Origin: Paraphysomonas bandaiensis
Lineage: Eukaryota; Protista; Chrysophyceae
Length of the DNA: 61,895 nucleotides
Assembly: GCA_965644295.1 (NCBI GenBank)
Contig: CBFFRP010000037.1
Span: 1-61,895 of the forward strand
Reading direction: 5' to 3'
This document shows positions 994 through 59,292 of the stretch, one piece after another. A program made the translations under genes and the position numbers. Position 1 is the stretch's first letter. The number at the start of each line of letters is the position of its first letter. Below the pieces are notes generated by a model. It was not told the DNA's origin and searched no databases. It was given only the letters and a program-made list of their open reading frames with translations.

Positions 994-3735
994 TTAGTTT
1001 TTAGATCGAATCGCCCTCTCCAGATTATTTTTCATCGTCACATAATGGGGGTGGTACTGACCTCCTTCACTTTCTAAAGCACGTAGTGCACCACTAAAAA
1101 GCTCTATAGCTGCATCCAATCTACCTAAGTCTTGTTCAACTAGTCCTGCATTATGCAAAAGTGCAGCAGGTGCAGTACCCTTACTGAATAGAGCCATGGC
1201 TTTTGAGAAGGACGCCCCAGCTCCCTTAATATCACCAACTGCTCGGTACATCGATCCAAGGTTAACCAAAATTTCATAGCGGTTGGGGTCAGCTGCGATG
1301 CCTTGCAAGAATGCCTCCTCGGCTTCAACTGCTCTTTCTGCACGCCAGAGAGCCAATCCCAACTGGTTGCATGCTGATGATTCATCGATCATATCCTGGG
1401 CAGGAGCCCCTTCCCCGGCCATATCCTTCAACCTACGATTGTCAAGAATAGCGCGACGAAGAAGGTTGATCGCCAGACCCGGATCACTGCCTTTCTCAAT
1501 GTCTACATTCGCGCGAGTAAAAAGCATGCCCGGTGGTGTCCAACCTAGTTCAAACGCTCGATCAAGGTTCTCCCCAGCCTTTTCTAATAGCATACCAGTA
1601 GCATCCCCCCACGCTACCCCATTCCCTCTACCTTCTTTATCCAAAAAGGCAGAATGAGGCGAAAGATTTTGAAGCGATCGATACCAGCTGTACATAGCAC
1701 TTCCCATATAGCCATATGCCATCGCAGAAGAGTAGTTGCTAAGATAAACGGCCTGTTGGAACCGATAGATGCTCCTAACACCAATAGCACAACTGAAACA
1801 ACATTTCATATAACGTCAACAATCAGTACCTTGAATACATATGCTGTCTCGTACTTGCTAAACCTGAGTTTATGTAAGCCGACACTTGTTGAGGGTATAC
1901 TCCAATTGCTCTGCAAATATAATCATGTTACACAAACCCTGGCAAAAGATGCAAGCGCACTTCCAATAAAAAACAGCGTTAACGTTTTAATACCTTTCCG
2001 ACATCTCCAAGGCAACGTCCGCTCTACCTATGCTCAGTTGCAACATCCCATGATTGTTGAGAGCTTTCACACTCGTCGGGCACACGTCAAGTGCACTGCT
2101 ATATAGACTCACTTCCGACCGCCAGTCAATATTCCTACTAACTACGCGATAGCTCATAACGCTTAATACCGGTAAAAAAAAGAGCATCATAGCACGACTC
2201 CAGCTCACACTCGAGGAAGATGTCAGAGTTGTGTCAGGTCGCGCACATTGTTCTGAGTTTGCTTCATCATCTGACTTCGCCACGTCGGTGACAATGCCAA
2301 TCCAACGCACAGCTTTCACGTATATATTATTATATCCAGCTCCAGCGAGCCTCTTCCATATCCACTGCAAGTCATTCGACATCAATTCCCCAAGGAGTAG
2401 TGAAAATCCGATGCTGGGAACAAAAAGTAAACGCTCAGCAAGTAGTGTACCCACAGGAAACAGTATATTTAGAGCGGGAATGAGAGGTACAATCGTGAGA
2501 CACAGAAAAAGAACAGCTTGCCTGCGACAATAGCGCACTGAACTAAAAAGAAACCATCCAATGAGCAAGTAAGTAGTTAGTGGTAACAGGTTACAGGGGG
2601 CAAGTAAAGACATCACTTCAGGAAGACATGCGTAACCGTAGTCGAAGCAGAGGTGCGGAGTAAGAGGATTCACGAGCTTTAAGGCGTACAAGAAGTGACT
2701 TTGAGCATAAGAGAGTACTCTAGACTTAAAATCCGGTAACAAAGATACATTGTTTTCCATAACTGTCCACTCATACATTTGAGTTTCGCCATGAAGCTGG
2801 GACCGAAATACGAGCGTGCATACTACACAAGCAATGCATACCGCCGATCGAACAGCTGGTCCTAGAATATATGGAGGAGAGGCGTACGGGAACCAGGAGC
2901 GAACAATTTCCAGCATTTTTGCTAATACGTTACGACAATACGCCCAACATCTCCCATTGAACGATGCTACTGTGCTACTTCTACTGTCCTTCGAATGATA
3001 TAGCCGAGTTGTCCTCAGTTGAATCCACTGTGCCGTCTCATGGCATTTGGTTGACACAGACTTCTCTGAGCTAGATTGCATATAGACGCTTTGATATAAC
3101 AACTCCAATACTACAAGAATCCCAAAAGTTGTTAAGCCAACTTCTTTCGATAGTGTAGCAGCTAGAGCAAAAGCGACAGATATGAGCCAGCAAAACCAAC
3201 CCCATAGTGCACGATCAAGCCGAGGTGAGTGCATACACGGAAGTGCATCTGAGTAAAGAATAAGACAGAAGAGCGTAAACATTCCACACAAGGAATCTGC
3301 TCTACCAACAAGACTGGCAACTGCTTCTACGTGAACTGGATGCGCACAAAAATAAAGTGAGGCCAATATGCTTCCTTCTTTTGTAATCCACCTCCGAGCC
3401 AACAAGTAAAACGATATTACACAAATGGAGTAAATAACCACATTTCCTAAGTGATAACCAAATGGATTAATACCATGTATCGAATAATTTAGTCGAAATG
3501 TAAGAGTCGTAACTGGTCGGTAGCTTTTGTGACTTCGCACAGCGGTGATATCCTGCCCCCAGAAATCATGAGTGAACACATCTGTCATTGATCCCGAGCC
3601 ATGAACATCAGGATTACTGACAATCGCTGCTCTGTCGTCCCACACATATCCAGCAGAATATGTATTATTGTATAACACACAGGCGAAGACAAGGAGGATC
3701 GCAGGGAAGATATCCACCCTCATGACACACCCCAC
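994..3735 (-). CDS. TMTC-family protein O-mannosyltransferase (transmembrane + DUF1736 + TPR), spliced with introns around 1810-1990
   Basis: Family motifs WDD..AI..NPDV, DFWG, SHKSYRP, HPVHVEAVASLVGRAD, SKEVG, CFDY and VGTLLAERLLFVPS in ORF 1987-3735; TPR-like repeats in ORF 994-1809. Confidence 0.9.
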
Positions 3736-8118: not shown

Positions 8119-10348
8119 CTATTCGGCATATACACCTGTGTCACGGTTAAAAGCACTGATTTTGATGGGGGTTTTACGCAGCAAAGACAATCGGGCAGCA
8201 GAAGCCAATACAGCGGCGTTCCACCCTGCTTCTATCCCCACAGATGGAGGGGACTGGGTGCGTACTCCATCAACAAACGACAGTAACTCCGCCCGAAACG
8301 CTTCTCTGTATCTTTCCGAGTAAGACTGTATTGGGGTATCCATTGCGCGCACGGAGTATGTATCAGACACACGACACGTAGTGCGATACATGTTGTCGCA
8401 TTGAATCATGCATCTAGATCCCAATACTTCAACTCTGTGGTCATATCCATACGGGCATTGGCGGCAATTATCTATAACCACCACTATACCGTGTTGGAAG
8501 CGAATCATAACCATTGATATATCCACATCCCCAGTATCTCCTGCATTGGAATCGAGTCTACACGAGCCATATGCTGTAACCTCTAAAGCCGGAGCTTGCG
8601 TCAGAAATAGAGCTAGGTCGAAGTCATGTAAGGAGAGGTCGTGGTAAAAACCCCCCGTGGTGCCAACAAGACTGGAGGCGGGGCGCCCCGGCTCACGGCT
8701 TGTGATATGCATATGCAATATATCACCTACTTCACCATTCTCAATGCGGCGTCGAATGCGCAGTATGGATGGGTCAAATCGCCTGTGAAAACCTACCATA
8801 CAGTGCCCCATGGTCTCATGTATTACACTCCGTACTTGTACAATCTCATGTAGTACTGGTGATACAGTTTTCTCTACAAACACATATTTCCCCCCTTGTA
8901 ATGCCATCATGATCTGTTCAGCATGCTGGTCAGGAGGCGAACATATTATCACCGCATCTACCAGGGGGCTTTTTACCATCAATCTCCAATCCGTTATGTA
9001 AGCAGGAATATTGTAGTCAATACAAGTCTTACGAGCCGCCTCTTGATCAGAGTCAGCAACGACAACAACTCGTACCGCTCGTATCGTAGTTGCATTCTCT
9101 AGATGGCTCTGAGTCATGGAAGAGAGTCCAATTATTCCAATTCGAAGAAGGGTGAGTGCGGCGGGGTTTTGTGGCAGAGGTGTGGGGGGGTTGATGGATA
9201 CCGACTCAAATAGCCCCTCTCCATTCTCTGAGCCGGACCCCGCGGGGGTGTATGACACAGTCCCAATACTAGGTACCATATTTCCGCTGTGAGCAGTCTT
9301 AAATGCAGCACTTGCTGCTGATAGAGTGGACGGAGCGCATTTATCGGACACAGTATAGCTAGCGCCACAGGCACCTTTTCCACAATCAGAAAAAGTATCG
9401 ATATCTACAGCAATGGCACTTTTGAATCGCTTGGCAGTCTTATCATTACTGGTTATCACAGATGTCACAGGTAACATGTCGGAATCTAATCCAGAAGCAG
9501 TTTGGGCGGTATCAGATCCGCCAGAGAGAGAGTGATAAGAGTCGGTGGATCTTCTCCTTCTTCTGGACTTGGTATCAGTGTCTCCTCCTTCGCTGCTTGA
9601 GCCTTCCTCCATTCCCAACCCATGCAACTCCGTGCTCTGAGCAGTCTCTATTGGAAGTGTTGCTGAACCAACCATAGTATACGGTGGTACAAACGTGCAG
9701 TCAAGAACACTTTCTCTGTAAGTTGGGTTCCAAGCCAACGGATATGTCAAGACAAAATCACGGTCATTCAACTTGGTGACGATGCGCGCCGTGTACCAGG
9801 ATGTAAAAATTGGGTTCCAAAAGTCTATCATATCCCCTGGCCCTTGCTTCACTCGCCATTCCTCGAGAATCACCTGGGCCTCTTTAAGTGCCTCAGGACA
9901 GCGTGTTGTAATTACCGACTCCTGCACTGCATTACATAACATACGGGAGATTAGTTGGATATCTTTCCGCTGTACAGCTTGTCGAAATAATCGTTCAAAA
10001 ATATGAGCGTCGTTAGATAACTCCGAGTCCACTGTAACCAATGAGCCTGTATGCATAACACTAGGCCCCCGCGCCCCCCACATCATATCACCTGTGCCCG
10101 GCTTTGTCAGGTCTCTTACAGCGCCAACACTGTCAGTTCCTTCACTACTCTCATCATGATGCTCACTCTTCAGAACTCTGTCTCCAGTGATGGTGTTCAG
10201 GAGAGTTGAATGATCAGTGCTGCGGCCTACATAACGACCATAAATAACACAATCACATACACAGCAACTATCTCACCACTCATCATGCAGATGTACTCTT
10301 GAATCCTCAACAGAAAAACACATCACATGGTTGTGCGGACAGCGACAT
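8119..10348 (-). CDS. Gfo/Idh/MocA (inositol-2-dehydrogenase-like) oxidoreductase with a long N-terminal extension containing a Tudor/Agenet-like segment
   Basis: C-terminal half has RIGIIG, DAVIICSP..H, GKYVFVEK, VGFHRRFDP, DLSLHDFD and YGYDHRVEVLG. The ORF stays open to ~10226, with a probable intron at 10227-10276 and an inferred ATG near 10348. Confidence 0.8.
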
Positions 10349-10467
10349 ACAAGCAGTCTAATTTCTACATATACCACACTCGCACAGCATATGGGCACAG
10401 TACCACATTGGTATAGATACTGCTGTACCACTCTCCTCCAGCATCAGACAGGAGTACCAGCACACAG

Positions 10468-10754
10468 CGCAGAGAAAAATACGGTACTCGGTCGAATGTT
10501 ACGGATGTTACAAATCAATAAACGGACGGAATACCCCCGTTGCTTTCACACAGTCTACACTACAGGTAGTCAAAGCAAGGTTCTCTTTACAGTTACTACA
10601 GAACTTCTCAGTAAGAGGAAATTATGCCTCTATTCTACAGCCGTACACTACACACTGCATAATATAACACCATACACCTCTATGTGCCCTATGCATATCT
10701 TATACAGTCACTTCAAGTACTAAACTGAAAAGAACATCCTCTCATTCCTCTACG
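10468..10754 (-). repeat. 3' LTR of the Copia element
   Basis: Direct repeat of 15166-15452 (offset 4698), with terminal inverted repeat CGTAGAG...CTCTGCG on the minus strand. Confidence 0.95.
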
Positions 10755-10770
10755 CACCCCTGTGATGTGT

Positions 10771-13700
10771 CTACTCGTTCCCAACGATCAGACATATCAA
10801 ATGACGAAACAATTTTCCTTGTAGGGGTTTAGTCAGCACATCAGCCAACATCTCTCCTGTAGGTAAGTACTGAAGCTTCACGTCTCCCCTATCATGGTGT
10901 TCTTCGACTAAAGCCTGCCTTACTCGTAGATATTTCGATCGGTATTTGCCTCCTCCTTTCGTTACGAGACTGAGATTCGACAAGTTGTCCTGATAAATAA
11001 CAGGTGGGTCAAGCGCATAGCCCTGCCCACACACAAACTCATGTAATCTCATTGCATTAGACATCATATCAGATAGGCCGACCAGCTCGGATTCGGTCGA
11101 GTCTTTCGTCACGATTCGTTGCTTAGTCGATCGGCATAGTACTGTGGCCCCTCCAAGCTGTACAACTACGCCTGTATGCCCTTTTCCGTCTTCGTGGGTG
11201 GCGAACGAAGCGTCGATGAAGCTTCTTACCCGCAGCTGTTCTCCAATCTTCAGCTGCAGATCTTGATCCCTTGTGTGCGCAAGGTATTTCAGCACTCGAT
11301 CCAACTTCTGCTGATCTCCGATTGTCGGACCCTTCACTCTTGTTGTGAGGTACGCTATACTGAGCAGGATGTCTGGTCTAACTCTTATCGATAGATATAG
11401 CAATTTGGCCACCACTGAATGGAAATTGGCAGCCTCCTTCCTCCCCAATTTCTGTCCTGCGCCCTCTGTGAACAGTGATGATGTCGCTGGAGATGCTGCT
11501 CTGCCAGTGACCGCTGCCTCCTCCAGCACTCCGTCTAGGTAAGCCCTCATTGACACCACTGCCCTGTCATCTATCATGCTCACATGCATACCTAAATACG
11601 ACATGTCTTTGTCATCACAGTATTTTACCTCACCATATTGTTTCTTTAGTTGTTCCACCAACCACTCGGTGTCACGCTTGTCTTGTGATAGCACTAGCAG
11701 ATCGTCCACGTGTAGTGTTATAGTGCACTGCTTGCCGTTGACAGTCCTATTGAGAACACACTGATCCACCGGGTTAGCCACGAAACCAATGCTCTCCAGG
11801 TAAGCTCTTATCGTGTTGTACCAGAGCTTGGCGCTCTGCACGCATCCATATAACGCTTTGTCTAGGCGCACCAATATTTTGCCTCTTTCATCAACATACG
11901 GCTGGATTGTGGGGTCTAGTTTTCTGAGTATTGTGGCCAACATCGGCTCCAATTCCATTATTACCTCTTCGCCTGACATCTCCGCATTGAGGTATGCACC
12001 ACCTATATCAATTGTCGATACATGTCTCCCCTCTCTCGCTGCTATTGCTAGGCATGCAAATACTGACTGTATGTCCACAGTGGGTGACGACGTGTCTGGG
12101 TACAGTTTCCGGTCCTGCTGCGCCCCGTTCGCAACCAGCCTCGCCTTGATTTTCTCGAACCTTCCGAGTCCGTCGTATTTCGTCTTCAAGAACATCAGCG
12201 ATCGAATTGTTCGTTTGAGTTGAGTCTTTGACAGGTCACTCCGGTGTACTGGAACTATTGCCTTTTTTTCGTGTAGCAGCTGCTTCAGCTCCCGTACTAT
12301 CGCCAGGTAGGCTTCTTTGCCGTGTTCCTTTAAGCCTTTGGTTACGCTTGTGTGATAGGCTCGATACATTACGGGCTTTCTTCTTGTGCCTGCCGCTATC
12401 CTTGCTCCTGCTGATGGTGATGATAGTACTTCGCTTGTATTGTGTGTCATCCCTGTAGTTTCCACCCCTGTAATTTCCGGATCGTCGGTGTCGTTGGGTG
12501 TTGCAGCGCCCGGCTCCTGTTCGCTCGGCCCATCAGCCCTGTCGCCATCATCGTCGACTAGTTCCGTGATTTTTGTTCTCTCTCTCTCTTCTGTGTGGCC
12601 GTGCCCTTCGTCTGTGTCAATGGCTGTCATCTGCCCCTCCTCGTGAGGCTCCTTCGGCTTATCGATCTTGTCATTCTCAGCTGGTGGCGTGGTATCCTCG
12701 ATCTCTCGACTCTCATTCTCACTGGTCGTGACAGGTGAGTGTGACTTGTTGTGCAATGACGATATTCTATTCACGGCGTCTATTACTATTTGCGTGGTCA
12801 CCATCTTCACCCAGTTGGTCCTACTCACATATTTATTTGTTTTAAGGTTTAAAAATATCCAACTCCCGTTTGCGTTGCCGGATGGGTACAGCGCGATACA
12901 TGGTTCTGTTCTGGCCTGCTCCGCGTTATTGCTCTTGACCTTCGGGTCATAACATTCTACGTAGTCCCCGAAAGCCAGTGACAGTTCCTTTTTATAATTG
13001 GGTTTCCGACCAGTCAATGCCACTCGCGGTGCTACAGTTGTGCCATTGGTGGATGGCCTCCTCAAGTTCATGCGGCTGTTGGCGTATCTCACCAGGTCTC
13101 TGACGTTGGCATCTGGTAGGTTCCATGGTAGCCCTGAATGTACACTGCGTATTGTCTCTTTGAGTCGCCTAATCTTCGCGTCGATCTTGTCCAGGTGATC
13201 TCCAGCCCCTGCCACGTCAATCTCCATCCCTGTGATCTTGCCTCTCAGGGCCTTGAATCCCGGCTGAGGGTCCAGGTAGGTAACTGTCGGTATGTACCCG
13301 TAGCTTCTTAACAGGTTTACTTGTTCCTGTAGGGCCAATCCCAACTGATCCGTTGTTTCGTTTTCGAGTGAAGTAACGATGGTTAGTCCCAATGGTTCCG
13401 CTAGTGTGAGCATGAACGATTGCTGTCTCACACTGAAGATGTCTGTGTACAGCCTTTGCTCCTTCTGCTGTTCTGCCTTCAGTTCCGGATCCGCGTATTG
13501 CCGGCTGACTTTCTTATTCGTCTGCTTGCCTCTCACCGCTTCGAACGGTCTCCCATATATGTCAAAAGCTCTTCTGATATCACTCGGGGTAAGTCGCACC
13601 CCTGTAACGTTTCCGTCGCTCACTAGCTGCACAGCATCTCTCTCCGAGTCGAAGCCCGAGTTTCGGATCAGGTCTCGTGCTTCTCGCGCTCTCGCGACTT

Positions 13701-15153
13701 CTACTTTCGAATATTGGGCTTCGCGCTCCGCTACAGTCGTTACGTTGACTTTGGCCGTCGCCCAGTCGCGCATGTCGGCCACATACATCTTGTTCTTTCG
13801 ATAGAAAGTCAAATCACTGTCAGGTAAGTGGACAGTGAAAGACTCTCCCTGCCTATATGTCACTTCATATATGTCTTCTACGTCCGCCTGACATAGTACG
13901 CTTGCCCTTAGCTCATCTGCTGTCTTACAGGTGAAGAATTGGTCTAGCTCGCCTACATTCGGTAGTTCCAGTGCGTGTCCCGATAATCCCGCCACGGTGC
14001 ATCCTCTGGACGCCGGTCTTACATTGTTCAGTAGTCTTGGGTGTACTACCGAGACATCCGCCTGATTGTCGAGTAATACTTCGTACCATTGGAATGGCTC
14101 GCTTCCTGACGTGAAGGCGTTCAACATTGTTGTCGTGCAGTGCTTGTTTTCTGATTCTTGGCTACTGTCTGGGCATTCGTTCATTCTGTGGCCTGGCTCA
14201 CCGCAGCCCCAACATATGAGCTGCCTTTTTTTCTGACCACGTTTGCTGTTGTGCGACTTCGTGTCGTTCCCTTGTTGCTGCTCTGGTGTATCATCGCTAT
14301 CTGCTGATTTCTTGCCTTTGTCAGACTTCGATTTGCTCACGAATGCGGATCCGCCGCCTGCTCTCGTTGCTCTCTTCGGCGTTAGATATTTTGATGCTTT
14401 AGTATATATTTCATTCACATGCGTAGGTGCTGTTTGCGTTCCCATTGTTAGATCGTTGAGATAGCTAGTTTTGAACTCGCCATATCTCGTGTCGTCCAGC
14501 CCTTCGAAGAAATCCATCGCGATGTCCTCTTCATTCATTTCCGCGTTGTTCATGTCTTTGTAGGCTTCTAATAGATGATCAAACCTCTCCTTATAAGTAA
14601 CTATACTCTCATATGCTCCCTGTTTAGCGTCTTTGTACCTTTTCCTCGCTTCTGCTCGTACCACTGTACTTACGCTGGAGTTAGTAGATACTTTGTGGGT
14701 TTGTTTGATAGCCAGCCATAGTAGTAGAGGATCCTTAGTCCTGTTCATGAGCTCGTATTCATCTAATAGCTTGACTGCATCCATTGATTCGTGGCTCAGA
14801 TGGTCTACCATGAATGAGTAGAATGCCGATCTATCGTTCCGCATCTTGTCTATTAATCTCCCTCTGGTCTTGGTCTTGTCCTTCATCAAGTCGAGGTTGA
14901 CTCCATAGGGGTCATCTTCCAAATCAAAATCCTCTGGGTTTATCGCATCGGGCTCATAATATTTGTCCAGCTCTACTAGGCGTGCAAGATCACCGTACTT
15001 TTGCATGCCCACCACTACAAGCCTCTGTTTGAATGTGGCGAAGTTCGAGTTGGCACCATATCTTAAAGTCGGTACATGTTCTGGTCTATCGGTGCTCGGT
15101 TTCTTGCCGAATCTTGCAAATCTTGTTGGCTTGTCGTTCGTTGTCTTCTTCAT
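10771..15153 (-). CDS. Copia Gag-Pol polyprotein, 1460 aa (Gag-PR-IN-RT-RNase H)
   Basis: Zinc knuckle CWGCGEPGHRMNEC, protease LLDNQA, integrase before RT, RT motifs KARLVANG, DIGGAYL, KALYG and HVDD, RNase H motifs DASFA, ELVG, YQDN and ADVLTK. Confidence 0.95.
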   Translation of the reverse strand: MKKTTNDKPTRFARFGKKPSTDRPEHVPTLRYGANSNFATFKQRLVVVGMQKYGDLARLVELDKYYEPDAINPEDFDLEDDPYGVNLDLMKDKTKTRGRLIDKMRNDRSAFYSFMVDHLSHESMDAVKLLDEYELMNRTKDPLLLWLAIKQTHKVSTNSSVSTVVRAEARKRYKDAKQGAYESIVTYKERFDHLLEAYKDMNNAEMNEEDIAMDFFEGLDDTRYGEFKTSYLNDLTMGTQTAPTHVNEIYTKASKYLTPKRATRAGGGSAFVSKSKSDKGKKSADSDDTPEQQQGNDTKSHNSKRGQKKRQLICWGCGEPGHRMNECPDSSQESENKHCTTTMLNAFTSGSEPFQWYEVLLDNQADVSVVHPRLLNNVRPASRGCTVAGLSGHALELPNVGELDQFFTCKTADELRASVLCQADVEDIYEVTYRQGESFTVHLPDSDLTFYRKNKMYVADMRDWATAKVNVTTVAEREAQYSKVEVARAREARDLIRNSGFDSERDAVQLVSDGNVTGVRLTPSDIRRAFDIYGRPFEAVRGKQTNKKVSRQYADPELKAEQQKEQRLYTDIFSVRQQSFMLTLAEPLGLTIVTSLENETTDQLGLALQEQVNLLRSYGYIPTVTYLDPQPGFKALRGKITGMEIDVAGAGDHLDKIDAKIRRLKETIRSVHSGLPWNLPDANVRDLVRYANSRMNLRRPSTNGTTVAPRVALTGRKPNYKKELSLAFGDYVECYDPKVKSNNAEQARTEPCIALYPSGNANGSWIFLNLKTNKYVSRTNWVKMVTTQIVIDAVNRISSLHNKSHSPVTTSENESREIEDTTPPAENDKIDKPKEPHEEGQMTAIDTDEGHGHTEERERTKITELVDDDGDRADGPSEQEPGAATPNDTDDPEITGVETTGMTHNTSEVLSSPSAGARIAAGTRRKPVMYRAYHTSVTKGLKEHGKEAYLAIVRELKQLLHEKKAIVPVHRSDLSKTQLKRTIRSLMFLKTKYDGLGRFEKIKARLVANGAQQDRKLYPDTSSPTVDIQSVFACLAIAAREGRHVSTIDIGGAYLNAEMSGEEVIMELEPMLATILRKLDPTIQPYVDERGKILVRLDKALYGCVQSAKLWYNTIRAYLESIGFVANPVDQCVLNRTVNGKQCTITLHVDDLLVLSQDKRDTEWLVEQLKKQYGEVKYCDDKDMSYLGMHVSMIDDRAVVSMRAYLDGVLEEAAVTGRAASPATSSLFTEGAGQKLGRKEAANFHSVVAKLLYLSIRVRPDILLSIAYLTTRVKGPTIGDQQKLDRVLKYLAHTRDQDLQLKIGEQLRVRSFIDASFATHEDGKGHTGVVVQLGGATVLCRSTKQRIVTKDSTESELVGLSDMMSNAMRLHEFVCGQGYALDPPVIYQDNLSNLSLVTKGGGKYRSKYLRVRQALVEEHHDRGDVKLQYLPTGEMLADVLTKPLQGKLFRHLICLIVGNE

Positions 15154-15165
15154 AATTTCCTCTTA
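15151..15165 (-). promoter_or_regulatory. Non-tRNA primer-binding site complementary to the element's own LTR
   Basis: Minus-strand TAAGAGGAAATTATG directly abuts the 5' LTR; 15151-15166 is the perfect reverse complement of 15309-15324. No TGG tRNA-type PBS is present. Confidence 0.75.
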
Positions 15166-15452
15166 CGCAGAGAAAAATACGGTACTCGGTCGAATGTTAC
15201 GGATGTTACAAATCAATAAACGGACGGAATACCCCCGTTGCTTTCACACAGTCTACACTACAGGTAGTCAAAGCAAGGTTCTCTTTACAGTTACTACAGA
15301 ACTTCTCAGTAAGAGGAAATTATGCCTCTATTCTACAGCCGTACACTACACACTGCATAATATAACACCATACACCTCTATGTGCCCTATGCATATCTTA
15401 TACAGTCACTTCAAGTACTAAACTGAAAAGAACATCCTCTCATTCCTCTACG
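15166..15452 (-). repeat. 5' LTR of the Copia element
   Basis: Direct repeat of 10468-10754. Confidence 0.95.
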
Positions 15453-15494
15453 CACAGAAACCTCCAGACCTGTACTTCTACTATAGTACATACA

Positions 15495-16051
15495 GTGTGT
15501 GTATGTATGTATGTATGTATGTATGTATGTATGTATGTATGTATGTATGTATGTATGTATGTATGTATGTATGTATGTATGTATGTATGTATGTATGTAT
15601 GTAGGTATGTATGTATGTATGTATGTATGTATGTATGTATGTATGTATGTATGTATGTATGTATGTATGTATGTATGTATGTATGTATGTATGTATGTAT
15701 GTATGTATGTATGTATGTATGTATGTATGTATGTATGTATGTATGTATGTATGTATGTATGTATGTATGTATGTATGTATGTATGTATGTATGTATGTAT
15801 GTATGTATGTATGTATGTATGTATGTATGTATGTATGTATGTATGTATGTATGTATGTATGTATGTATGTATGTATGTATGTATGTATGTATGTATGTAT
15901 GTATGTATGTATGTATGTATGTATGTATGTATGTATGTATGTATGTATGTGTGTATGTATGTATGTATGTATGTATGTATGTATGTATGTGTGTATGTAT
16001 GTATGTATGTATGTATGTATGTATGTATATGTATGTATGTATGTATGTATG

Positions 16052-16083
<32 letters not shown>

Positions 16084-16306
16084 TGTATGTATGTATGTAT
16101 GTATGTATGTATGTATGTATGTATGTATGTATGTATGTATGTATGTATGTATGTATGTATGTATGTATGTATGTATGTATGTATGTATGTATGTATGTAT
16201 GTATGTATGTATGTATGTATGTATGTATGTATGTATGTATGTATGTATGTATGTATGTATGTATGTATGTATGTATGTATGTATGTATGTATGTATGTAT
16301 GTATGT
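15495..16306. repeat. (GTAT)n microsatellite, about 0.8 kb
   Basis: About 200 GTAT units with few interruptions. Confidence 0.98.
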
Positions 16307-28452: not shown

Positions 28453-30170
28453 TTATACTGTCTGCGCGACTCCCATCACACATACCGATACACACGGACT
28501 GTAAGGCCGTCTGCATACGCACACACGAAGCACTTTCCACCAGACGTCGGGCACTGGGGCATCGTGCCAAAGGTGTACTGCTCGAAAGCATTGCAGCAAA
28601 CAACGATTGTATACAAGGACAGTAGCATGGGTCCGATCATACCCCGAACGACGTACCTCTGATGAGTCTGAATGGACAGATGAAGACAAAGGAATTTACA
28701 TTGCCGACGCAGTAGCAGGAGAGGACTGGCTTGAGGTAGATAGACTACTCGGACGACAAAATTACACTGTGTCTGTAACACAGAAGTGGACCAAGCCATT
28801 GAGAGAATACTCACCGAGGGTTTATGGCACTGGCGTCTAACTGGGGAACGACGACCGTATCGCACTAGCCCCCTGCTCACGGATTTCCAATCCCTCCGTA
28901 ATCAACGGACGCTGGAGGCCTACACAGCTCTCCGAGACCAACGCTACGGTCACAATCCTGACCGGGCTCCTGGATACTGGAAAGACAGCGGAGCACTACT
29001 TCCGCGCAAACTGGCGCAAGCAGATGGTGGACTATCAAAGGACAAAGTGAGTTCCCACCTGCGCCAGCGAGTACTCAATGCAGCACTGACATGGGACAAA
29101 TCCTTCAGCATAGGAAGAAACCGGGCGAAAACCAAACACGGACTCGACATGGCTAAAGCCGCATGTTCTGACTGCGGATTTAGACTAGACTCACTCAAGC
29201 ATATGTGTCTAGACTGTACAAACGACAACATAACGCAGATAAGGGAGTCTGCATTTCACAGCTACAAAAACGCGCTTCAAGAAGAAATGAGAAATCCGGA
29301 ACTACCCCAATGGACCACCACTGTACTCCAGCGACTCTCCAGCAGGGCCTGGAACCCTTCCGTGCCACAGGTGGAGAGATTCTGGACGGGTACCATCACA
29401 ACTACACAGCTTGAAATGGTTTTTGGAGATCACATCCATGAGTCACTGACATCCCAAGGACTGCGCAGCATCGAATCAGCAATCATCAAATTACTTCTAC
29501 CGCTTTTCGCTGCAGCAAAGCTAATGCTCCAAGATCGAAGTAGAAGATACGTTACCCTACAGAAAGGTCCCCCAAGGCTACTACCGCGGCCGCGTCCAAA
29601 ACACAGACAGAAATGGAAACTCCCAAGGGTGCTAAGATTACTAGGAATCCACAGACGAACCGAGACTGGAACACCGCCCACCGCACATATGAACCCTACC
29701 AACCATACACAAAGGACCATAGCACCGGACCGTATGAAACCATCAGGACCTAGACAACGGCGACGACGTCTCCGGCAACTCCACCTATGCCCAACGCCCA
29801 GACGGTGCATGGCGACACCGCCACATTCCACCACACCATCAACCTCTCAGTACACACATCTAGTGCTCGGTACACTCAGGACCTTAATACAGAACCCTGT
29901 ACCCCAGAGCCTGGGGGAACCTTATCCCAAGGGGAGACCCCCGGACAACACACGAGCAGGGCGAACTCACACACAACATCAAGAACGGAAGTGGTTGCAC
30001 CTTGGTGCTTGCGGCAACGCACAAGTAGCTTCTGTAGCGCTAAATAGTAGGATAATAGAATTTGTGCTGATTAGTTATGGGTAGAGGTCTAACTAGTAGA
30101 ACTAGCATTCAACTAGCCACTGTATCGGAACGAGTTTTTAACGCCTATTGCTAAATAAAAAGACCTTCAA
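28453..30170 (+). mobile_element. 5'-truncated non-LTR retrotransposon with RNase H and CCHC zinc motif, frameshifted
   Basis: RNase H motifs IHTDCK and WVRSYPE..GIYIADAVA, CSDC-x8-H-x4-C zinc motif, and a conserved 3' tail ending CGCCTATTGCTAAATAAAAAGACCTTCAATA. Confidence 0.85.
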
Positions 30171-30396
30171 TATAACTAGCTATATCTTCAACTAAACAAC
30201 TAGTTAGAGTGTTGTATAGTACTTCTAAAGTTGTACTAATAGTATCTAGTTAGTTTAGGTACTATATGTATCTCTGCATGCAACCGTACTCATGTAATAA
30301 TCAGACTTTCATATAATATATGTATCATAAGAAGTTGTAAATCAAAATAAATAGCGAGAAAAATTGAAGCTAATTGAACTGACTAATAGTTACTTT

Positions 30397-31424
30397 TTAT
30401 TCCAAGTAGTCGTCATTATCACCTTGCCACACATCAACCTCATCGTCTCCCTTTACAACTAAATCATCAACTTCTACATCAGTATCATCCTCTTCATACT
30501 CAGCTAAGTGTATAACATGAGAATACACACCCTTCTCACGATATCTAAATTCTTGTTCTAACTCACGACATCTAATTCGGGCATGGACCAACTTGTCCAT
30601 TACTCTCCCACATTTGACGTTCAGATATTCTACACTCAATGCGCTTATTACATTCCAAACGACGCTTAAGGTAAATGCGACGCTTATTTGTGATACTTGC
30701 ACTTTCACGACGAAGGCACAGCGTACGTATTTTTCCAAACGGAAACCCATTTTGGTCATTAGCTGATAATGTGTAACCTCAAGGTTGTGGACATCCTTAA
30801 ACCACTTCTGTATATCCAGCAACTCTACTGCTCTACCTTCCTCACTTCTGATACGCCAAACCTTATGTAACTTAGAAGATTAATAGCCTTGAAGGGATTC
30901 ATTACCTCTGCTCGTATAGGACCTGTCCAATCTGAGTTAATGTATTTCATGCGCCCCGGATATATTGATTCATAGCTGCTATGAGGAAGTGTAGTACCCA
31001 TGTTATCAACCCATTCTTTCCATAGGCTGTATAGCGTACTAACGCCAATACCTAAATAGTCGCTAGCGCGATTCATGACGTCAGTAATACTTCTCAATTG
31101 ATGGCCGTTATAGAAGTCATGACGCATGCACCAAATTAACCTCAAATACATGCTTTAATCATCCATATACAGAGAAGTACCACTGCAGCGACTACAGGGA
31201 CATATAAATTCCAATGGGCCCGCCTTTGGCTCAGATGGAGTGAAGTTAGGGGCAGCATAGCGATGGGGTCTGCTAGGGGTCTTAACGGCAATCTCGGAGG
31301 CAATTTCAGGGTTTAAATCACATAAACGAATGCTTCGACACCCCTCCTGGAATATTTTGGCCTTATTCTTTGATCCTGGGGGTCTACTATGCTTAATTCG
31401 AGGTGTAGTGGTCTCATTTACCAC
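30397..31424 (-). pseudogene. Tc1/IS630-like transposase remnant (HTH region and acidic tail, DDE core absent), unit 1
   Basis: HTH-like RASDYLGIGVSTLYSLWKEW; a 44-nt intron at 30862-30905 restores the frame to ..LLDIQKWF..LMTKMGF; in-frame TAA at 31155-31157; no DDE motifs. Confidence 0.55.
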
Positions 31425-32035
31425 TATGTCTCCATCAGCCTCAGAGTGATCTTGAAGGGACTTCTTTCACATAATAATTTTTTCCTCGACATCTAGGAGC
31501 CCCTGAGAGTAGCGGAGGGTATGGTCAGGTAGCCGAGAGCGTGCTCTACGATGTTATGCTATTTGGGGTCGTATGGCTTCAAGCTGAATATACAGTGTAT
31601 TCTGCAGGTGGGAAGATCGTCCTCGAGTTCCCTCCTCCAAAAAAAAACAACATTTTTGATTTTTGAGTGCCCATATCTCACGACACAGACATCGTCACCA
31701 TAAAGTCATAACGAAATGTTCAGCATTAAATGGACTATTTCGTGTTAAAATCACAGTATTTCGATTACTGAAACGAAAAAGTTATGGAATTAAATATAAA
31801 AGACACTTTTTCATGATTTTTTTCATGATTTTTGGCCTTTCTCTTCAGCGAATTGTCATCACTCGTAATACCAGGGTAAAACCCTGTTTGTTTATGTGTC
31901 TATGTTTATTCTTTTCTCTTTTAGCCACTCGTAGGCTAATAATTAATATTATTTTGGTTTTATCCACAGCCGAAGCTAGCATCATATGTCGTCAAAAACC
32001 GAGGCATTCGTGCTTTGAAAAGTTTTCCCTCGAAA

Positions 32036-33325
32036 ATGAGCAACCTTTTGACCATTTTATTGATGTTCGTATATATGCTACATCCATACTTCAAAGTGAA
32101 TGGATTTTCGAAACATCTGAAATGGATGGCAGAGCTTTCTCCCGAAGGAACGGTGGTCGCGAGAGGGTCGAGAAACGTTGTTTTCTTGAGTAATTCGTCC
32201 AATTATGTTGTACGGGTGTCAGTATCTTCTCCAAATCTGGAGAAAGCTATAGAGGTAAATATTACGAATTTGTGGGAAGGGATTGGATTGTCCTGTGTAA
32301 ATGTCAATGACTCATTCTGCACTTTATTACAACGTCTGTCCAGCGATGTCGTTGTATTGGACTTCAGTAATAACATTGGCATCTGGGTATATCCGTCTCA
32401 TGAGGCTGAAAACGAGCACGAGCAAGCTTGGAAATATTCCTCCACCCCCGGGCTGGCTTTAGCGACGCCGCCGTCGCCTCTGAACTACGATTATGTATTG
32501 AATACAGAACTGATTATTGGTAACGACCGATTTCCCTTGACATGTCACATTGAGTTCGCAGCAAAGTATATGGGACATATTCAGGACAAACAGCATTGGA
32601 TCGAAACGGACTTCTTGAGTCTAATTCATGATATCTTCTATGATCAGAGCCGGATGTTGAATTCCTTTAACACATACCACACTGACTGCCACCCTTTGAA
32701 TATTTTGTATATCACTGATATTCATAACGTAACACATTTCGTTTGGAACGACTTTGGATATTCAAATGGAAGCAGGTCGATGGGTTCTGAGGACATGTCG
32801 ACACGCCTCCATCCCCAGTACTTGGTGAGTATAGAAAATGTGCTGGACACTCTGATATTTCAGGCGAATCGAAACGAGTATAAAAACATAATCAAAGCTA
32901 TGGAATATATCAAGCTTTCTCATACTAAACGAAGTGGCACGTCTCCGTCGATTTATTTCAGTGAAATGCTGAGTATTATTCAGAATACAGTCTTGCAATT
33001 TGATAGCGCCACCTTAAATGCTTTCTTCAAAGAGGGCCCACGGGGATTCTTCATCCCCTATGTGAATAGGGAGCTCAATCGATTGCGCGAGGAAAACGAA
33101 GCGCAAAATCAGAAAATCGAAGCGCAAAATCAGATAATCGAAGCGCAAAATCAGATAATCGAAGCGCAAAATCAGAAAATCGATCGCCTGACTGAGGACA
33201 TCCGTTTCCTGCATGCGGGAATGGAAACGATGAAAAAAATATTAATTGAACAAGCGTTTTCGAGGAAGGATGTTGCCGAAGAAGATCCTGTACCTGGCAC
33301 TGACGCTTTCGCGCACGAACTGTAG
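32036..33325 (+). CDS. Signal-peptide atypical protein-kinase-like protein with 4 EAQNQxI heptads (unit 1)
   Basis: Hydrophobic leader LLTILLMFVYML..VNG, G-loop-like VVARGSRNVVF, catalytic-loop-like HTDCHPLNIL, DFG, coiled-coil tail. Confidence 0.7.
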   Translation: MSNLLTILLMFVYMLHPYFKVNGFSKHLKWMAELSPEGTVVARGSRNVVFLSNSSNYVVRVSVSSPNLEKAIEVNITNLWEGIGLSCVNVNDSFCTLLQRLSSDVVVLDFSNNIGIWVYPSHEAENEHEQAWKYSSTPGLALATPPSPLNYDYVLNTELIIGNDRFPLTCHIEFAAKYMGHIQDKQHWIETDFLSLIHDIFYDQSRMLNSFNTYHTDCHPLNILYITDIHNVTHFVWNDFGYSNGSRSMGSEDMSTRLHPQYLVSIENVLDTLIFQANRNEYKNIIKAMEYIKLSHTKRSGTSPSIYFSEMLSIIQNTVLQFDSATLNAFFKEGPRGFFIPYVNRELNRLREENEAQNQKIEAQNQIIEAQNQIIEAQNQKIDRLTEDIRFLHAGMETMKKILIEQAFSRKDVAEEDPVPGTDAFAHEL

Positions 33326-34290
33326 ATGCAGCCGGTGATGACGAAAGTGTATAATATGTACCTACAATTGCTTCACTTACAACCCCTGCTAGAACTATCC
33401 TTGATGTTGTGCGTACACATACGACGCCATTGGCTAGCTTCCTTCCCCATTGATGTGATGGCATATTCACTGATTGGTATACTTTGTCGCGGATGAGAAA
33501 GATGAGCATGTTATGAATGATGCAGTTTTGTAGTTTTATAGCTAATTTATCATATTATGACTATTGCAGTAGTTAGAGTAAGTAGTTATGAGGATTTATG
33601 ATTGAAGATACATAGATGGAAGAGAGCAGTTATGTCTGAGATAGGCCGAGTTGCGATACGGAGTGAGCAAACATGAGTGCAATCTGTGTTTTTGGGATAT
33701 ATTCTGGTAATGAGCGTGATATGAATTGTTGTGAGCATGATATGATATTAATTATTAGTGGATATATTATGAGGGTTATTTATTTGGCCATTCTAGTCAG
33801 TCAATGGCAATTCATAATGATATTTGGTTATTTATTTATTGATTATATTTATTTGCTATTTATTTTTATTTGACTGAAAACCCTCAAATATTCACAAAAG
33901 TGTTATGCTTAATAAGGTGCTGCTTCTGTAGCGCTAAATAGTAGGATAATAGAATTTGTGCTGATTAGTTATGGGTAGAGGTCTAACTAGTAGAACTAGC
34001 ATTCAACTAGCCACTGTATCGGAACGAGTTTTTAACGCCTATTGCTAAATAAAAAGACCTTCAATATAACTAGCTATATCTTCAACTAAACAACTAGTTA
34101 GAGTGTTGTATAGTACTTCAAAAGTTGTACTAATAGTATCTAGTTAGTTTAGGTACTATATGTATCTCTGCATGCAACCGTACTCATGTAATAATCAGAC
34201 TTTCATATACTATATGTATCATAAGAAGTTGTAAATCAAAATAAATAGCGTGAAAAATTGAAGCTAATTGAACTGACTAATAGTTACTTT

Positions 34291-35387
34291 TTATTCCAAG
34301 TAGTCGTCATTATCACCTTGCCACACATCAACCTCATCGTCTCCCTTTACAACTAAATCATCAACTTCCACATCAGTATCATCCTCTTCATACTCAGCTA
34401 AGTGTATAACATGAGAATACACACCCTTCTCACGATATCTAAATTCTTGTTCTAACTCACGACATCTAATTCGGGCATGGACCAACTTGTCCATTACTCT
34501 CCCACATTTGACGTTCAGATATTCTACACTCAATGCGCTTATTACATTCCAAACGACGCTTAAGGTAAATGCGACGCTTATTTGTGATACTTGCACTTTC
34601 ACGACGAAGGCACAGCGTACGTATTTTTCCAAACGGAAACCCATTTTGGTCATTAGCTGATAATGTGTAACCTCAAGGTTGTGGACATCCTTAAACCACT
34701 TCTGTATATCCAGCAACTCTACTGCTCTACCTTCCTCACTTCTGATACGCCAAACCTTATGTAACTTAGAAGATTAATAGCCTTGAAGGGATTCATTACC
34801 TCTGCTCGTATAGGACCTGTCCAATCTGAGTTAATGTATTTCATGCGCCCCGGATATATTGATTCATAGCTGCTATGAGGAAGTGTAGTACCCATGTTAT
34901 CAACCCATTCTTTCCATAGGCTGTATAGCGTACTAACGCCAATACCTAAATAGTCGCTAGCGCGATTCATGACGTCAGTAATACTTCTCAATTGATGGCC
35001 GTTATAGAAGTCATGACGCATGCACCAAATTAACCTCAAATACATGCTTTAATCATCCATATACAGAGAAGTACCACTGCAGCGACTACAGGGACATATA
35101 AATTCCAATGGGCCCGCCTTTGGCTCAGATGGAGTGAAGTTAGGGGCAGCATAGCGATGGGGTCTGCTAGGGGTCTTAACGGCAATCTCGGAGGCAATTT
35201 CAGGGTTTAAATCACATAAACGAATGCTTCGACACCCCTCCTGGAATATTTTGGCCTTATTCTTTGATCCTGGGGGTCTACTATGCTTAATTCGAGGTGT
35301 AGTGGTCTCATTTACCACTATGTCTCCATCAGCCTCAGAGTGATCTTGAAGGGACTCTCTTCCGCATAATAATTTTTTCCTCGACAT
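34291..35387 (-). pseudogene. Tc1/IS630-like transposase remnant, unit 2
   Basis: Copy of 30397-31424. Confidence 0.55.
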
Positions 35388-35930
35388 CTAGGAGCCCCTG
35401 AGAGTAGCGGAGGGTATGGTCAGGTAGCCGAGAGCGTGCTCTACGATGTTATGCTATTTGGGGTCGTATGGCTTCAAGCTGAATATACAGTGTATTCTGC
35501 AGGTGGGAAGATCGTCCTCGAGTTCCCTCCTCCAAAAAAAAACAACATTTTTGATTTTTGAGTGCCCATATCTCACGACACAGACATCGTCACCATAAAG
35601 TCATAACGAAATGTTCAGCATTAAATGGACTATTTCGTGTTAAAATCACAGTATTTCGATTACTGAAACGAAAAAGTTATGGAATTAAATATAAAAGACA
35701 CTTTTTCATGATTTTTTTCATGATTTTTGGCCTTTCTCTTCAGCGAATTGTCATCACTCGTAATACCAGGGTAAAACCCTGTTTGTTTATGTGTCTATGT
35801 TTATTCTTTTCTCTTTTAGCCACTCGTAGGCTAATAATTAATATTATTTTGGTTTTATCCACAGCCGAAGCTAGCATCATATGTCGTCAAAAACCGAGGC
35901 ATTCGTGCTTTGAAAAGTTTTCCCTCGAAA

Positions 35931-37220
35931 ATGAGCAACCTTTTGACCATTTTATTGATGTTCGTATATATGCTACATCCATACTTCAAAGTGAATGGAT
36001 TTTCGAAACATCTGAAATGGATGGCAGAGCTTTCTCCCGAAGGAACGGTGGTCGCGAGAGGGTCGAGAAACGTTGTTTTCTTGAGTAATTCGTCCAATTA
36101 TGTTGTACGGGTGTCAGTATCTTCTCCAAATCTGGAGAAAGCTATAGAGGTAAATATTACGAATTTGTGGGAAGGGATTGGATTGTCCTGTGTAAATGTC
36201 AATGACTCATTCTGCACTTTATTACAACGTCTGTCCAGCGATGTCGTTGTATTGGACTTCAGTAATAACATTGGCATCTGGGTATATCCGTCTCATGAGG
36301 CTGAAAACGAGCACGAGCAAGCTTGGAAATATTCCTCCACCCCCGGGCTGGCTTTAGCGACGCCGCCGTCGCCTCTGAACTACGATTATGTATTGAATAC
36401 AGAACTGATTATTGGTAACGACCGATTTCCCTTGACATGTCACATTGAGTTCGCAGCAAAGTATATGGGACATATTCAGGACAAACAGCATTGGATCGAA
36501 ACGGACTTCTTGAGTCTAATTCATGATATCTTCTATGATCAGAGCCGGATGTTGAATTCCTTTAACACATACCACACTGACTGCCACCCTTTGAATATTT
36601 TGTATATCACTGATATTCATAACGTAACACATTTCGTTTGGAACGACTTTGGATATTCAAATGGAAGCAGGTCGATGGGTTCTGAGGACATGTCGACACG
36701 CCTCCATCCCCAGTACTTGGTGAGTATAGAAAATGTGCTGGACACTCTGATATTTCAGGCGAATCGAAACGAGTATAAAAACATAATCAAAGCTATGGAA
36801 TATATCAAGCTTTCTCATACTAAACGAAGTGGCACGTCTCCGTCGATTTATTTCAGTGAAATGCTGAGTATTATTCAGAATACAGTCTTGCAATTTGATA
36901 GCGCCACCTTAAATGCTTTCTTCAAAGAGGGCCCACGGGGATTCTTCATCCCCTATGTGAATAGGGAGCTCAATCGATTGCGCGAGGAAAACGAAGCGCA
37001 AAATCAGAAAATCGAAGCGCAAAATCAGATAATCGAAGCGCAAAATCAGATAATCGAAGCGCAAAATCAGAAAATCGATCGCCTGACTGAGGACATCCGT
37101 TTCCTGCATGCGGGAATGGAAACGATGAAAAAAATATTAATTGAACAAGCGTTTTCGAGGAAGGATGTTGCCGAAGAAGATCCTGTACCTGGCACTGACG
37201 CTTTCGCGCACGAACTGTAG
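35931..37220 (+). CDS. Kinase-like protein, unit 2 (4 heptads)
   Basis: Translation identical to unit 1. Confidence 0.7.
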   Translation: MSNLLTILLMFVYMLHPYFKVNGFSKHLKWMAELSPEGTVVARGSRNVVFLSNSSNYVVRVSVSSPNLEKAIEVNITNLWEGIGLSCVNVNDSFCTLLQRLSSDVVVLDFSNNIGIWVYPSHEAENEHEQAWKYSSTPGLALATPPSPLNYDYVLNTELIIGNDRFPLTCHIEFAAKYMGHIQDKQHWIETDFLSLIHDIFYDQSRMLNSFNTYHTDCHPLNILYITDIHNVTHFVWNDFGYSNGSRSMGSEDMSTRLHPQYLVSIENVLDTLIFQANRNEYKNIIKAMEYIKLSHTKRSGTSPSIYFSEMLSIIQNTVLQFDSATLNAFFKEGPRGFFIPYVNRELNRLREENEAQNQKIEAQNQIIEAQNQIIEAQNQKIDRLTEDIRFLHAGMETMKKILIEQAFSRKDVAEEDPVPGTDAFAHEL

Positions 37221-38185
37221 ATGCAGCCGGTGATGACGAAAGTGTATAATATGTACCTACAATTGCTTCACTTACAACCCCTGCTAGAACTATCCTTGAT
37301 GTTGTGCGTACACATACGACGCCATTGGCTAGCTTCCTTCCCCATTGATGTGATGGCATATTCACTGATTGGTATACTTTGTCGCGGATGAGAAAGATGA
37401 GCATGTTATGAATGATGCAGTTTTGTAGTTTTATAGCTAATTTATCATATTATGACTATTGCAGTAGTTAGAGTAAGTAGTTATGAGGATTTATGATCGA
37501 AGATACATAGATGGAAGAGAGCAGTTATGTCTGAGATAGGCCGAGTTGCGATACGGAGTGAGCAAACATGAGTGCAATCTGTGTTTTTGGGATATATTCT
37601 GGTAATGAGCGTGATATGAATTGTTGTGAGCATGATATGATATTAATTATTAGTGGATATATTATGAGGGTTATTTATTTGGCCATTCTAGTCAGTCAAT
37701 GGCAATTCATAATGATATTTGGTTATTTATTTATTGATTATATTTATTTGCTATTTATTTTTATTTGACTGAAAACCCTCAAATATTCACAAAAGTGTTA
37801 TGCTTAATAAGGTGCTGCTTCTGTAGCGCTAAATAGTAGGATAATAGAATTTGTGCTGATTAGTTATGGGTAGAGGTCTAACTAGTAGAACTAGCATTCA
37901 ACTAGCCACTGTATCGGAACGAGTTTTTAACGCCTATTGCTAAATAAAAAGACCTTCAATATAACTAGCTATATCTTCAACTAAACAACTAGTTAGAGTG
38001 TTGTATAGTACTTCAAAAGTTGTACTAATAGTATCTAGTTAGTTTAGGTACTATATGTATCTCTGCATGCAACCGTACTCATGTAATAATCAGACTTTCA
38101 TATACTATATGTATCATAAGAAGTTGTAAATCAAAATAAATAGCGTGAAAAATTGAAGCTAATTGAACTGACTAATAGTTACTTT

Positions 38186-39213: not shown

Positions 39214-39824
39214 TATGTCTCCATCAGCCTCAGAGTGATCTTGAAGGGACTTCTTTCACATAATAATTTTTTCCTCGACATCTAGGAGCCCCTGAGAGTA
39301 GCGGAGGGTATGGTCAGGTAGCCGAGAGCGTGCTCTACGATGTTATGCTATTTGGGGTCGTATGGCTTCAAGCTGAATATACAGTGTATTCTGCAGGTGG
39401 GAAGATCGTCCTCGAGTTCCCTCCTCCAAAAAAAAACAACATTTTTGATTTTTGAGTGCCCATATCTCACGACACAGACATCGTCACCATAAAGTCATAA
39501 CGAAATGTTCAGCATTAAATGGACTATTTCGTGTTAAAATCACAGTATTTCGATTACTGAAACGAAAAAGTTATGGAATTAAATATAAAAGACACTTTTT
39601 CATGATTTTTTTCATGATTTTTGGCCTTTCTCTTCAGCGAATTGTCATCACTCGTAATACCAGGGTAAAACCCTGTTTGTTTATGTGTCTATGTTTATTC
39701 TTTTCTCTTTTAGCCACTCGTAGGCTAATAATTAATATTATTTTGGTTTTATCCACAGCCGAAGCTAGCATCATATGTCGTCAAAAACCGAGGCATTCGT
39801 GCTTTGAAAAGTTTTCCCTCGAAA

Positions 39825-59095: not shown

Positions 59096-59292
59096 GTGGC
59101 ATGACCAAACCTGGTCAACTGGTTTGACCAGGTATTTAGTGTATGTAACAGTGTGTAACTAGAGTTTATGAAGTGATTGTTTATGGTTCAGAGTGGCAAT
59201 AGATAGCTTTAAGTGTGTTATTTGACTTATTATAGTTATCATATTATAGAGAACATTATATAGTTGTATACTAGAGCTTTAAGCAGTAACAA

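Follow-up and report, generated by a model that had tools for sequence, protein, structure and literature searches.

How does a long terminal repeat (LTR) retrotransposon begin reverse transcription when no tRNA-type primer-binding site follows its 5′ LTR? The question is posed by a Ty1/copia element of 4985 bp that lies on the minus strand (15452..10468) of a 61,895-nt contig from the chrysophyte Paraphysomonas bandaiensis (CBFFRP010000037.1; the whole of this stretch, which we analysed, is called the window below). An earlier note, made from the DNA letters alone, had described the element as intact and as primed by the 5′ end of its own RNA. We reach a similar answer: judging from the sequences of the window and of the element's relatives, self-priming of the type known from Tf1, a Ty3/gypsy chromovirus, is quite probably the best explanation for how this Copia element starts its first DNA strand.

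The observation at the centre of the argument is a pairing of the element with itself. On the minus strand, CATAATTTCCTCTTAC at 15324..15309 within the 5′ LTR recurs as its exact reverse complement, GTAAGAGGAAATTATG, at 15166..15151, and the 16 perfect pairs comprise the last base of the LTR, G (15166), together with the 15 nt beyond it. The earlier note had reported this match, the absence of a spacer and the absence of a TGG after the 5′ LTR, and all three hold, the site downstream of the LTR being 15 nt long. No TGG-type site was found in relatives either. The 3′ LTR carries the LTR-internal 16-mer as well. By chance, a perfect 16-mer complement within a 287-nt LTR is expected at about 272/4^16 = 6e-8, and matches with at most two mismatches number three as compared with a mean of 0.05 in 100 shuffles of the whole window. 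The published definition of self-priming, an LTR complement of at least 10 bp that starts 0–5 bp after the LTR (PMC6317226), describes this arrangement.

In the minimum-free-energy fold of the leader, which is more stable than folds of shuffled sequences (z = −2.67), the structure is closed by the 16-bp helix and followed by a GAGAA/UUCUC stem, with about 142 nt of R-U5 between the site and its LTR partner. The shorter stem corresponds to an extension that the note had proposed, with GAGAA (15307..15303) and TTCTC (15174..15170) as partners on either side of a 1×3 internal loop. The pairing itself appears in our fold; the extension is retained in relative L002 but not in L003 or L004, and is therefore probably not functional. 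A scan of the whole window against Rfam matched no family.

If the LTR copy and the site were linked by more than coincidence in one element, they should change together in others, and the note had pointed to such covarying complementarity as a check on its reading. A polyprotein search found many relatives in marine and freshwater metagenomes and in Logan assemblies, and the contigs of the closest ones were used; among the best 120 protein matches listed, none came from NCBI or UniRef. A profile made from 39 polyproteins, run against JGI metagenome contigs, added 80 further loci at 26–46% identity. We tested 42 loci, namely the window element and 41 distinct relatives with an intact open reading frame (ORF) of at least 1300 amino acids (aa), at 26–77% amino acid identity. 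Most close relatives are represented by a collapsed contig with the primer sequence at one end and the primer-binding site at the other; contig ends were joined across the collapsed LTR/leader only, the LTR was searched for its longest perfect inverted match to the zone preceding the ATG, and the counts were made by script.

The three relatives L002, L003 and L004 already illustrate the pattern. Whereas the window element pairs GTAAGAGGAAATTATG with CATAATTTCCTCTTAC, L002 (75% protein identity) carries GTAAGAGGAAATTA after its LTR and TAATTTCCTCTTAC within it, L003 (68%) carries GTAAGAGAAAATTATG and CATAATTTTCTCTTAC, and L004 (59%) carries GTGATAGAAAATTATG and CATAATTTTCTATCAC. These three hold 14–16 perfect pairs, and within L003 and L004 we count three compensatory double changes, in which both sides are altered and pairing is still perfect. 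Across all loci, 25 of 42 have a perfect block that reaches 12 nt or more (median 15, maximum 17), with the partner 46–200 nt upstream, and the block sequences are unrelated from locus to locus, as in GTCTTAATTAAAAG, ATAATTATCGATTAGTG, ACTTACAGGAAATTAT and ATATTAGGATCAAGT. When sites and LTRs were swapped between loci, 12 nt was reached in 0.9% of 1722 pairs, some of which are close relatives, and random 80-nt zones of the ORF matched against the same LTRs gave a median longest match of 7 nt. The covarying complementarity is thus present.

How deep the trait goes was read from a tree of the reverse transcriptase and RNase H (RT-RH) region, built from the last 500 residues of the polyprotein. 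The block occurs in every major branch of this tree, the deepest included, which makes it ancestral for the sampled clade. A transcriptome of the diatom Chaetoceros supplied one relative (38% identity), and lake metagenomes many others; by these sequence matches the clade covers at least chrysophytes and diatoms.

The position of the block is as regular as its pairing. It begins at the last base of the LTR in the window element and in L004, the sole loci that give true LTR ends. In most relatives a U5-end motif, ...AAC or ...TAC(A), which we liken to the canonical LTR end ...CA, stands directly before the block, and AC occupies the block border in 14 of 25 loci against a background of 10%. Because the 3′ end of a primer sits at the LTR end by definition, a primer must anneal exactly at the block. 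Three further loci, L049, L072 and L010, in which the 3′ LTR is again followed by a primer-binding site, ATG and ORF, are tandem arrays or circularly collapsed assemblies, and were discarded as sources of true LTR ends.

The edges of the blocks are equally telling. The blocks are purely Watson–Crick, and of their 50 borders 49 are plain mismatches and one is a G·U; at the loop-side border two consecutive mismatches occur in 24 of 25 loci. A stem selected for stability alone is expected to have G·U pairs and ragged ends. Sharp blocks made of Watson–Crick pairs only would be expected if the site is copied from the primer, and our counts are consistent with this; they would be unusual for a purely thermodynamic stem. 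Judging by the title of a paper cited as ref. 61 in PMC6317226, the Tf1 self-primer is reported to rewrite its site in each cycle.

At its other end, the LTR copy starts with TCA in 18 of 25 loci (background 5%, p = 3e-18) and with CA in 23. The local start sequences TCACTTTT, TCATTATT and TCATAATT resemble the initiators YCA(+1)YTYY of stramenopile oomycetes and YYA(+1)NWYY of mammals, the YCA(+1)YT type being both stramenopile and metazoan (PMC3599244). Transcription thus probably starts on one of the first two bases of the complementary block, as self-priming would require. With regard to translation, the AUG lies inside the duplex in the sublineage of the window element, and in most relatives the block lies 1–55 nt upstream of the AUG.

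The sequence of events under self-priming can be laid out from these positions. Transcription would begin in the 5′ LTR at about 15324/15323, at the CA of CATAAT..., and the first 15–16 nt of the RNA would fold back over the R-U5 of about 142 nt and pair perfectly with 15166/15165..15151. The primer RNA would read CAUAAUUUCCUCUUA(C), 15–16 nt in length. The element's RNase H would nick the transcript where the duplex ends, and the released 3′-OH would be extended into U5. Plus-strand strong-stop synthesis would then copy the attached primer, by which the primer-binding site would be rewritten in every cycle, and such rewriting would keep the two sequences Watson–Crick complementary while both drift. 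As regards the note's claim that the RNA 5′ end is the primer, the covarying complementarity is what it predicts and the TCA at the block border in relatives fits it. What the sequences show is the anatomy, the complementarity and its co-variation across a deep clade, the sharp borders and the fixed position at the U5 end; where transcription starts, the cut by RNase H and which RNA serves as primer are inferred.

Several observations weigh against this account. Seventeen of the 42 loci have no block of at least 12 nt, although eight of these have 10–11 nt and several of the others are contigs with incomplete LTR coverage. The note had placed a box about 35 nt upstream of the LTR-internal copy, and TATATTAT is indeed found 33–40 nt upstream; this TATA-like box is absent from the distant relatives, and we give it little weight. 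Our searches found no RNA 5′ end, the family's only transcript fragment (L088) being internal, and none of the fetched contigs bears a poly(A) tail. The tRNA search yielded none in the window and one tRNA-Ala (L063) in 20 longer loci. Two sets of contigs were considered as evidence for transcript ends and rejected: L086 and L087, from Logan, represent a collapsed DNA assembly in circularly permuted form, and L002 and L089, which begin alike at TTACTGAG, within the primer sequence, derive from one metagenome assembly, so that their shared start is best read as an assembly break and not as an RNA end.

The presence of the 16-mer in both LTRs also fits a scheme in which the primer is supplied by the copy in the 3′ LTR, or in trans by a second packaged RNA, for example if transcription started further downstream and the sequence belonged to U3; the failure to recover an RNA 5′ end and the poor conservation of the TATA-like box speak for it. 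We regard this scheme as unlikely, for the TCA or CA placed exactly at the 5′ border of the block in 18–23 of 25 loci would go unexplained if the block were internal to U3. Moreover, an internal block needs a precisely placed cut and has nothing to set its sharp 5′ border, whereas a block at the RNA start needs one cut. The duplex could instead be an RNA structure with another role, the primer coming from elsewhere: a translation/packaging switch in which the AUG is concealed, a signal for dimerisation or packaging, or a cyclisation element like CYC5/CYC3 of Ty1. The location of the AUG within the duplex in the window sublineage and the leader's better folding relative to shuffles speak for such a role, which nevertheless strikes us as distinctly improbable given that the block excludes the AUG in most relatives, that its site-side 5′ border always coincides with the U5 end, and that sharp-ended blocks of Watson–Crick pairs only are unusual for selected RNA stems. 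In the window element, furthermore, there is no other sequence between LTR and ORF where a primer could bind.

A further alternative is that a host tRNA, half-tRNA or tRNA fragment primes the element, as in most Copia elements (PMC6317226), and that the LTR complementarity is incidental; our tRNA scan covered only the window and 20 longer loci. Quite apart from the lack of TGG after the LTR, the sites differ nearly wholly among relatives and yet match their own LTRs, which a conserved host tRNA cannot explain, and many of them are very A+T-rich (for example ATAAATTAAAAATTAT); we hold this explanation to be very unlikely indeed. Any resemblance of the site to the anticodon loop of initiator tRNA-Met is, we presume, limited to the TTATG of the start codon. 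Self-priming from the RNA 5′ end remains the account that we favour.

The limits of the element were fixed with the help of a second insertion of the same family, found in ocean metagenome contigs (L090/L091), in which the flank ...ACTCGTAT immediately precedes CGTAGAGG. From this junction we take CGTAGAG as the LTR start; the direct repeat of 290 nt (100% identity) returned by a repeat search is thereby refined to LTRs of 287 bp, and the CTGTG duplication is exposed. The LTR termini are CG...CG, with the terminal inverted repeat CGTAGAG/CTCTGCG, the canonical termini being TG...CA. Among relatives, the LTR ends in ...CTACG in the close L002 and L004 and in ...AACA in more distant ones. The ORF begins 12 nt past the 5′ LTR and ends 16 nt short of the 3′ LTR, and the ...CACAGGGGTG motif of the intervening candidate polypurine-tract region is kept in L001–L004. 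The features of the element are collected in Table 1.

Table 1. Features of the self-complementary Copia element, listed by window position
Feature	Coordinates	Strand	Remarks
Target-site duplication CTGTG, 3′ copy	10463..10467	−	perfect 5-bp match to 15457..15453
3′ LTR, 287 bp	10468..10754	−	100% identity to 5′ LTR; primer sequence repeated at 10626..10611
Candidate polypurine-tract region ACACATCACAGGGGTG, from stop codon to 3′ LTR	10755..10770	−	by position; putative function
Single gag-protease-integrase-RT-RH (gag-PR-INT-RT-RH) ORF, 1460 aa, stop codon included	10771..15153	−	ORF listing, Pfam and structure
Primer-binding site TAAGAGGAAATTATG, abutting 5′ LTR	15151..15165	−	final 3 nt are the ORF ATG (15153..15151)
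5′ LTR, 287 bp	15166..15452	−	U3 ~15452..15325 and R-U5 ~15324..15166 if the transcript begins at the primer sequence; putative split
LTR-internal CATAATTTCCTCTTAC, proposed first 15–16 nt of RNA and self-primer	15309..15324	−	perfect complement of 15166..15151; CA at 5′ border
TATA-like box TATATTAT	15357..15364	−	33–40 nt upstream of the proposed transcription start and LTR copy
Target-site duplication CTGTG, 5′ copy	15453..15457	−	matches 10467..10463

Within the polyprotein, Pfam identified a CCHC knuckle (zf-CCHC) at aa 314–328 and a Copia-type reverse transcriptase (RVT_2) at aa 983–1218 (E = 1e-26); Pfam rve found no match in the integrase region between them. An AlphaFold model of aa 470–800, made from 39 aligned sequences (the window element and 38 relatives), has a mean pLDDT of 90 and matches the PFV, MVV, HIV and RSV integrases with a Foldseek probability of 1.0. 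With an integrase fold upstream of the reverse transcriptase, the domain order is therefore gag-PR-INT-RT-RH, the Copia order, and the reverse transcriptase, the domain order and the LTRs with their target-site duplication all identify the element as Ty1/copia (Pseudoviridae) type. A sequence-profile search of the PDB gave matches to gag, nucleocapsid and Ty3 proteins only. That the integrase is too divergent for Pfam rve suggests a lineage distant from the plant TAR elements discussed below. Residues invariant in the alignment of the window polyprotein with 38 relatives include D362, D571, D628 and D1150-D1151, the last two being the YVDD-type residues, identical throughout. In its presumed protease active site the clade has LLDNQAD (aa ~358–366, window ~14082–14056, minus strand; D362 in 39 of 39 aligned sequences), unlike the usual retropepsin motif D-T/S-G-A.

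The description of the element as an intact Ty1/copia retrotransposon holds in each of its parts: an RVT_2 domain with an integrase upstream, identical LTRs, a CTGTG duplication and an open ORF of 1460 aa. The further suggestion that it is currently competent is also probably right, considering the identical LTRs, the perfect duplication, the intact ORF and the conserved catalytic residues. Several ocean metagenomes contain copies with 99% identity, of which one (L090/L091) is inserted elsewhere, and a transcript fragment of the family (L088, 98.4–99.4% nucleotide identity) is present in the MMETSP-derived JGI sample 3300017004, which also holds a transcript of a neighbouring host gene. On the strength of these matches, the family is transcribed and has recently moved, and the window copy is probably a recent insertion that is still mobile. 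Relative to the window copy, L088 lacks 99 nt (window 13829–13927) and 76 nt (13118–13193). Both gaps lie between short direct repeats (CACCTG/TACCTG; CACC/TACC+AG) and have no GT-AG ends, which points to deletion by template switching or to faulty assembly rather than to splicing. The L088 contig starts with T10.

The surroundings of the element agree with the host assignment. The flanking oxidoreductase ORF (8119–10086) has 100% identity to an MMETSP transcript protein, and a TMTC-like gene in two ORFs (994–1809 and 1987–3735) has 98–99% identity to a protein of MMETSP1103, annotated as genus Paraphysomonas (Chrysophyceae). These matches point to a Paraphysomonas-like heterotrophic chrysophyte as the source, and to neither a diatom nor human DNA. 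The element was inserted right beside a (TGTA)n microsatellite of 811 bp (15496–16306, ~204 copies, 98% matches), which lies ~40 nt beyond the 5′ target duplication. Further along the window, five tandem copies of a 3.9-kb unit (~30028–49600, spacing 3894–3980 nt, 99–100% identical) each contain an ORF of 416–464 aa without a Pfam match and a variable 21-nt minisatellite (GAAAATCGAAGCGCAAAATCA); the periodic GC skew of the window is due to these units. A second, different Copia-type fragment at 51855–55018 (plus strand) has gag_pre-integrase and SH3_retrovirus Pfam domains, both lacking in the main element, and we found for it neither an LTR pair nor an inverted match upstream of its ORF. A Ty3/gypsy-type pol at 56131–59108 (minus strand), perhaps extending to 60935, has RVT_1, RT_RNaseH, integrase H2C2 and rve domains in overlapping ORFs, and no LTRs were found for it. 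A 146-nt tandem repeat (2.4 copies, 99%) occupies the left window end (1–349), and a 68-nt satellite (7.6 copies, 61382–61895) runs off the right end. Among the relatives, the tRNA-Ala gene of L063 (5767–5839, minus strand) lies 24 nt downstream of the polyprotein stop, at a locus with a 9-nt block only.

What would the finding mean? Self-priming is not new to Copia in itself; what appears to be new is a broad protist clade that has it, and its local peculiarities are the start codon inside the site and the CG..CG termini of the LTRs. Tentatively, and as a possibility that we would not yet put our weight on, a deep-branching Copia clade of chrysophytes, diatoms and other aquatic protists may be self-primed, with a 12–17-nt primer taken from the transcript initiator. 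Such a clade might have gained self-priming independently of Tf1/sushi and TAR or kept it from a self-priming LTR-retrotransposon ancestor, and in one sublineage the start codon would have been absorbed into the site, with the consequence that any one RNA molecule could be primed or translated but not both. This would be the second Copia clade for which self-priming is predicted, phylogenetically broad, environmentally abundant and with unusually clean co-variation. The result also bears on which of the two, tRNA priming or self-priming, is the older mode among LTR retroelements, a question that has been raised before (PMC3601003). There is a practical side as well: annotation pipelines that demand a tRNA-type primer-binding site would miss or misjudge such protist elements. 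Paraphysomonas is culturable, has public transcriptomes and offers, in the window element, a young copy of a transcribed family as a test system. The main value of the case lies in the strength and breadth of the co-variation and in this culturable host.

To our knowledge, self-priming has been shown experimentally for Tf1 only, where the duplex is 11 nt. Like the window element, Tf1 and the sushi chromoviruses of Ty3/gypsy have a site that abuts the 5′ LTR and complements the proposed RNA start in the same LTR; their RNA folds back over R-U5, as that of the window element would, and complementarity to a tRNA is absent there and probably also here. The window element differs in being a Copia, whose domains run PR-INT-RT-RH and whose reverse transcriptase is of the RVT_2 type, in the longer duplex of its clade (12–17 nt as compared with 11 nt) and in the start codon that its sublineage has within the site; the mechanism demonstrated by experiment in Tf1 is here a prediction.

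Within Copia, self-priming has been proposed for the rice families Houba and Osr-1, and Neumann et al. (2019) predicted it in 89% of 203 plant TAR elements, using as their criterion an LTR complement that starts directly after or within 5 bp of the LTR and spans at least 10 bp (PMC6317226). These reports overturn the premise of the earlier note, which gave tRNA and half-tRNA priming as the modes described for Ty1/copia. The TAR elements resemble the window element in being Copia, mostly with a single gag-pol ORF, in their 5-bp target duplication and in falling under that same criterion; their hosts are land plants, whereas the window clade belongs to a chrysophyte and other aquatic protists. 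In the open-access full texts searched, we found no report of self-priming Copia elements from protists. The fungal GalEa Copia elements also do without a tRNA-type site and have a conserved structure at the primer-binding position, a Conserved Hairpin Site, for which the authors sought a complement in the LTR and found none (PMC5445492). That site is a local palindrome or hairpin (9 bp including the last LTR base), in contrast to the non-palindromic TAAGAGGAAATTATG of the window element, whose partner lies 142 nt upstream and in its relatives 46–200 nt upstream in the LTR.

The CoDi elements (CoDiI and CoDiII) are divergent Copia of marine stramenopiles that occur in ocean metagenomes too; they measure 5.2–8.1 kb, mostly have TG/CA termini, and the paper describing them is silent on priming (PMC2806351). 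As in the window clade, of which one member (38%) is from Chaetoceros, these are divergent Copia in stramenopiles; compared by description only, the window element differs in its 4985 bp, its CG..CG termini and its chrysophyte host, and the label 'CoDi-like' that the note gave to relatives is at most a putative one. Finally, in the Copia elements with half-tRNA priming, namely Drosophila copia, yeast Ty5 and the plant lineages Osser and Bianca, the site corresponds to the anticodon stem-loop of tRNA-Met or tRNA-Ile and is conserved from element to element (PMC6317226). These elements share with the window element that the 3′ end of a full tRNA is unused, but whereas their sites are conserved, those of the window clade are hypervariable and each tracks its own LTR.

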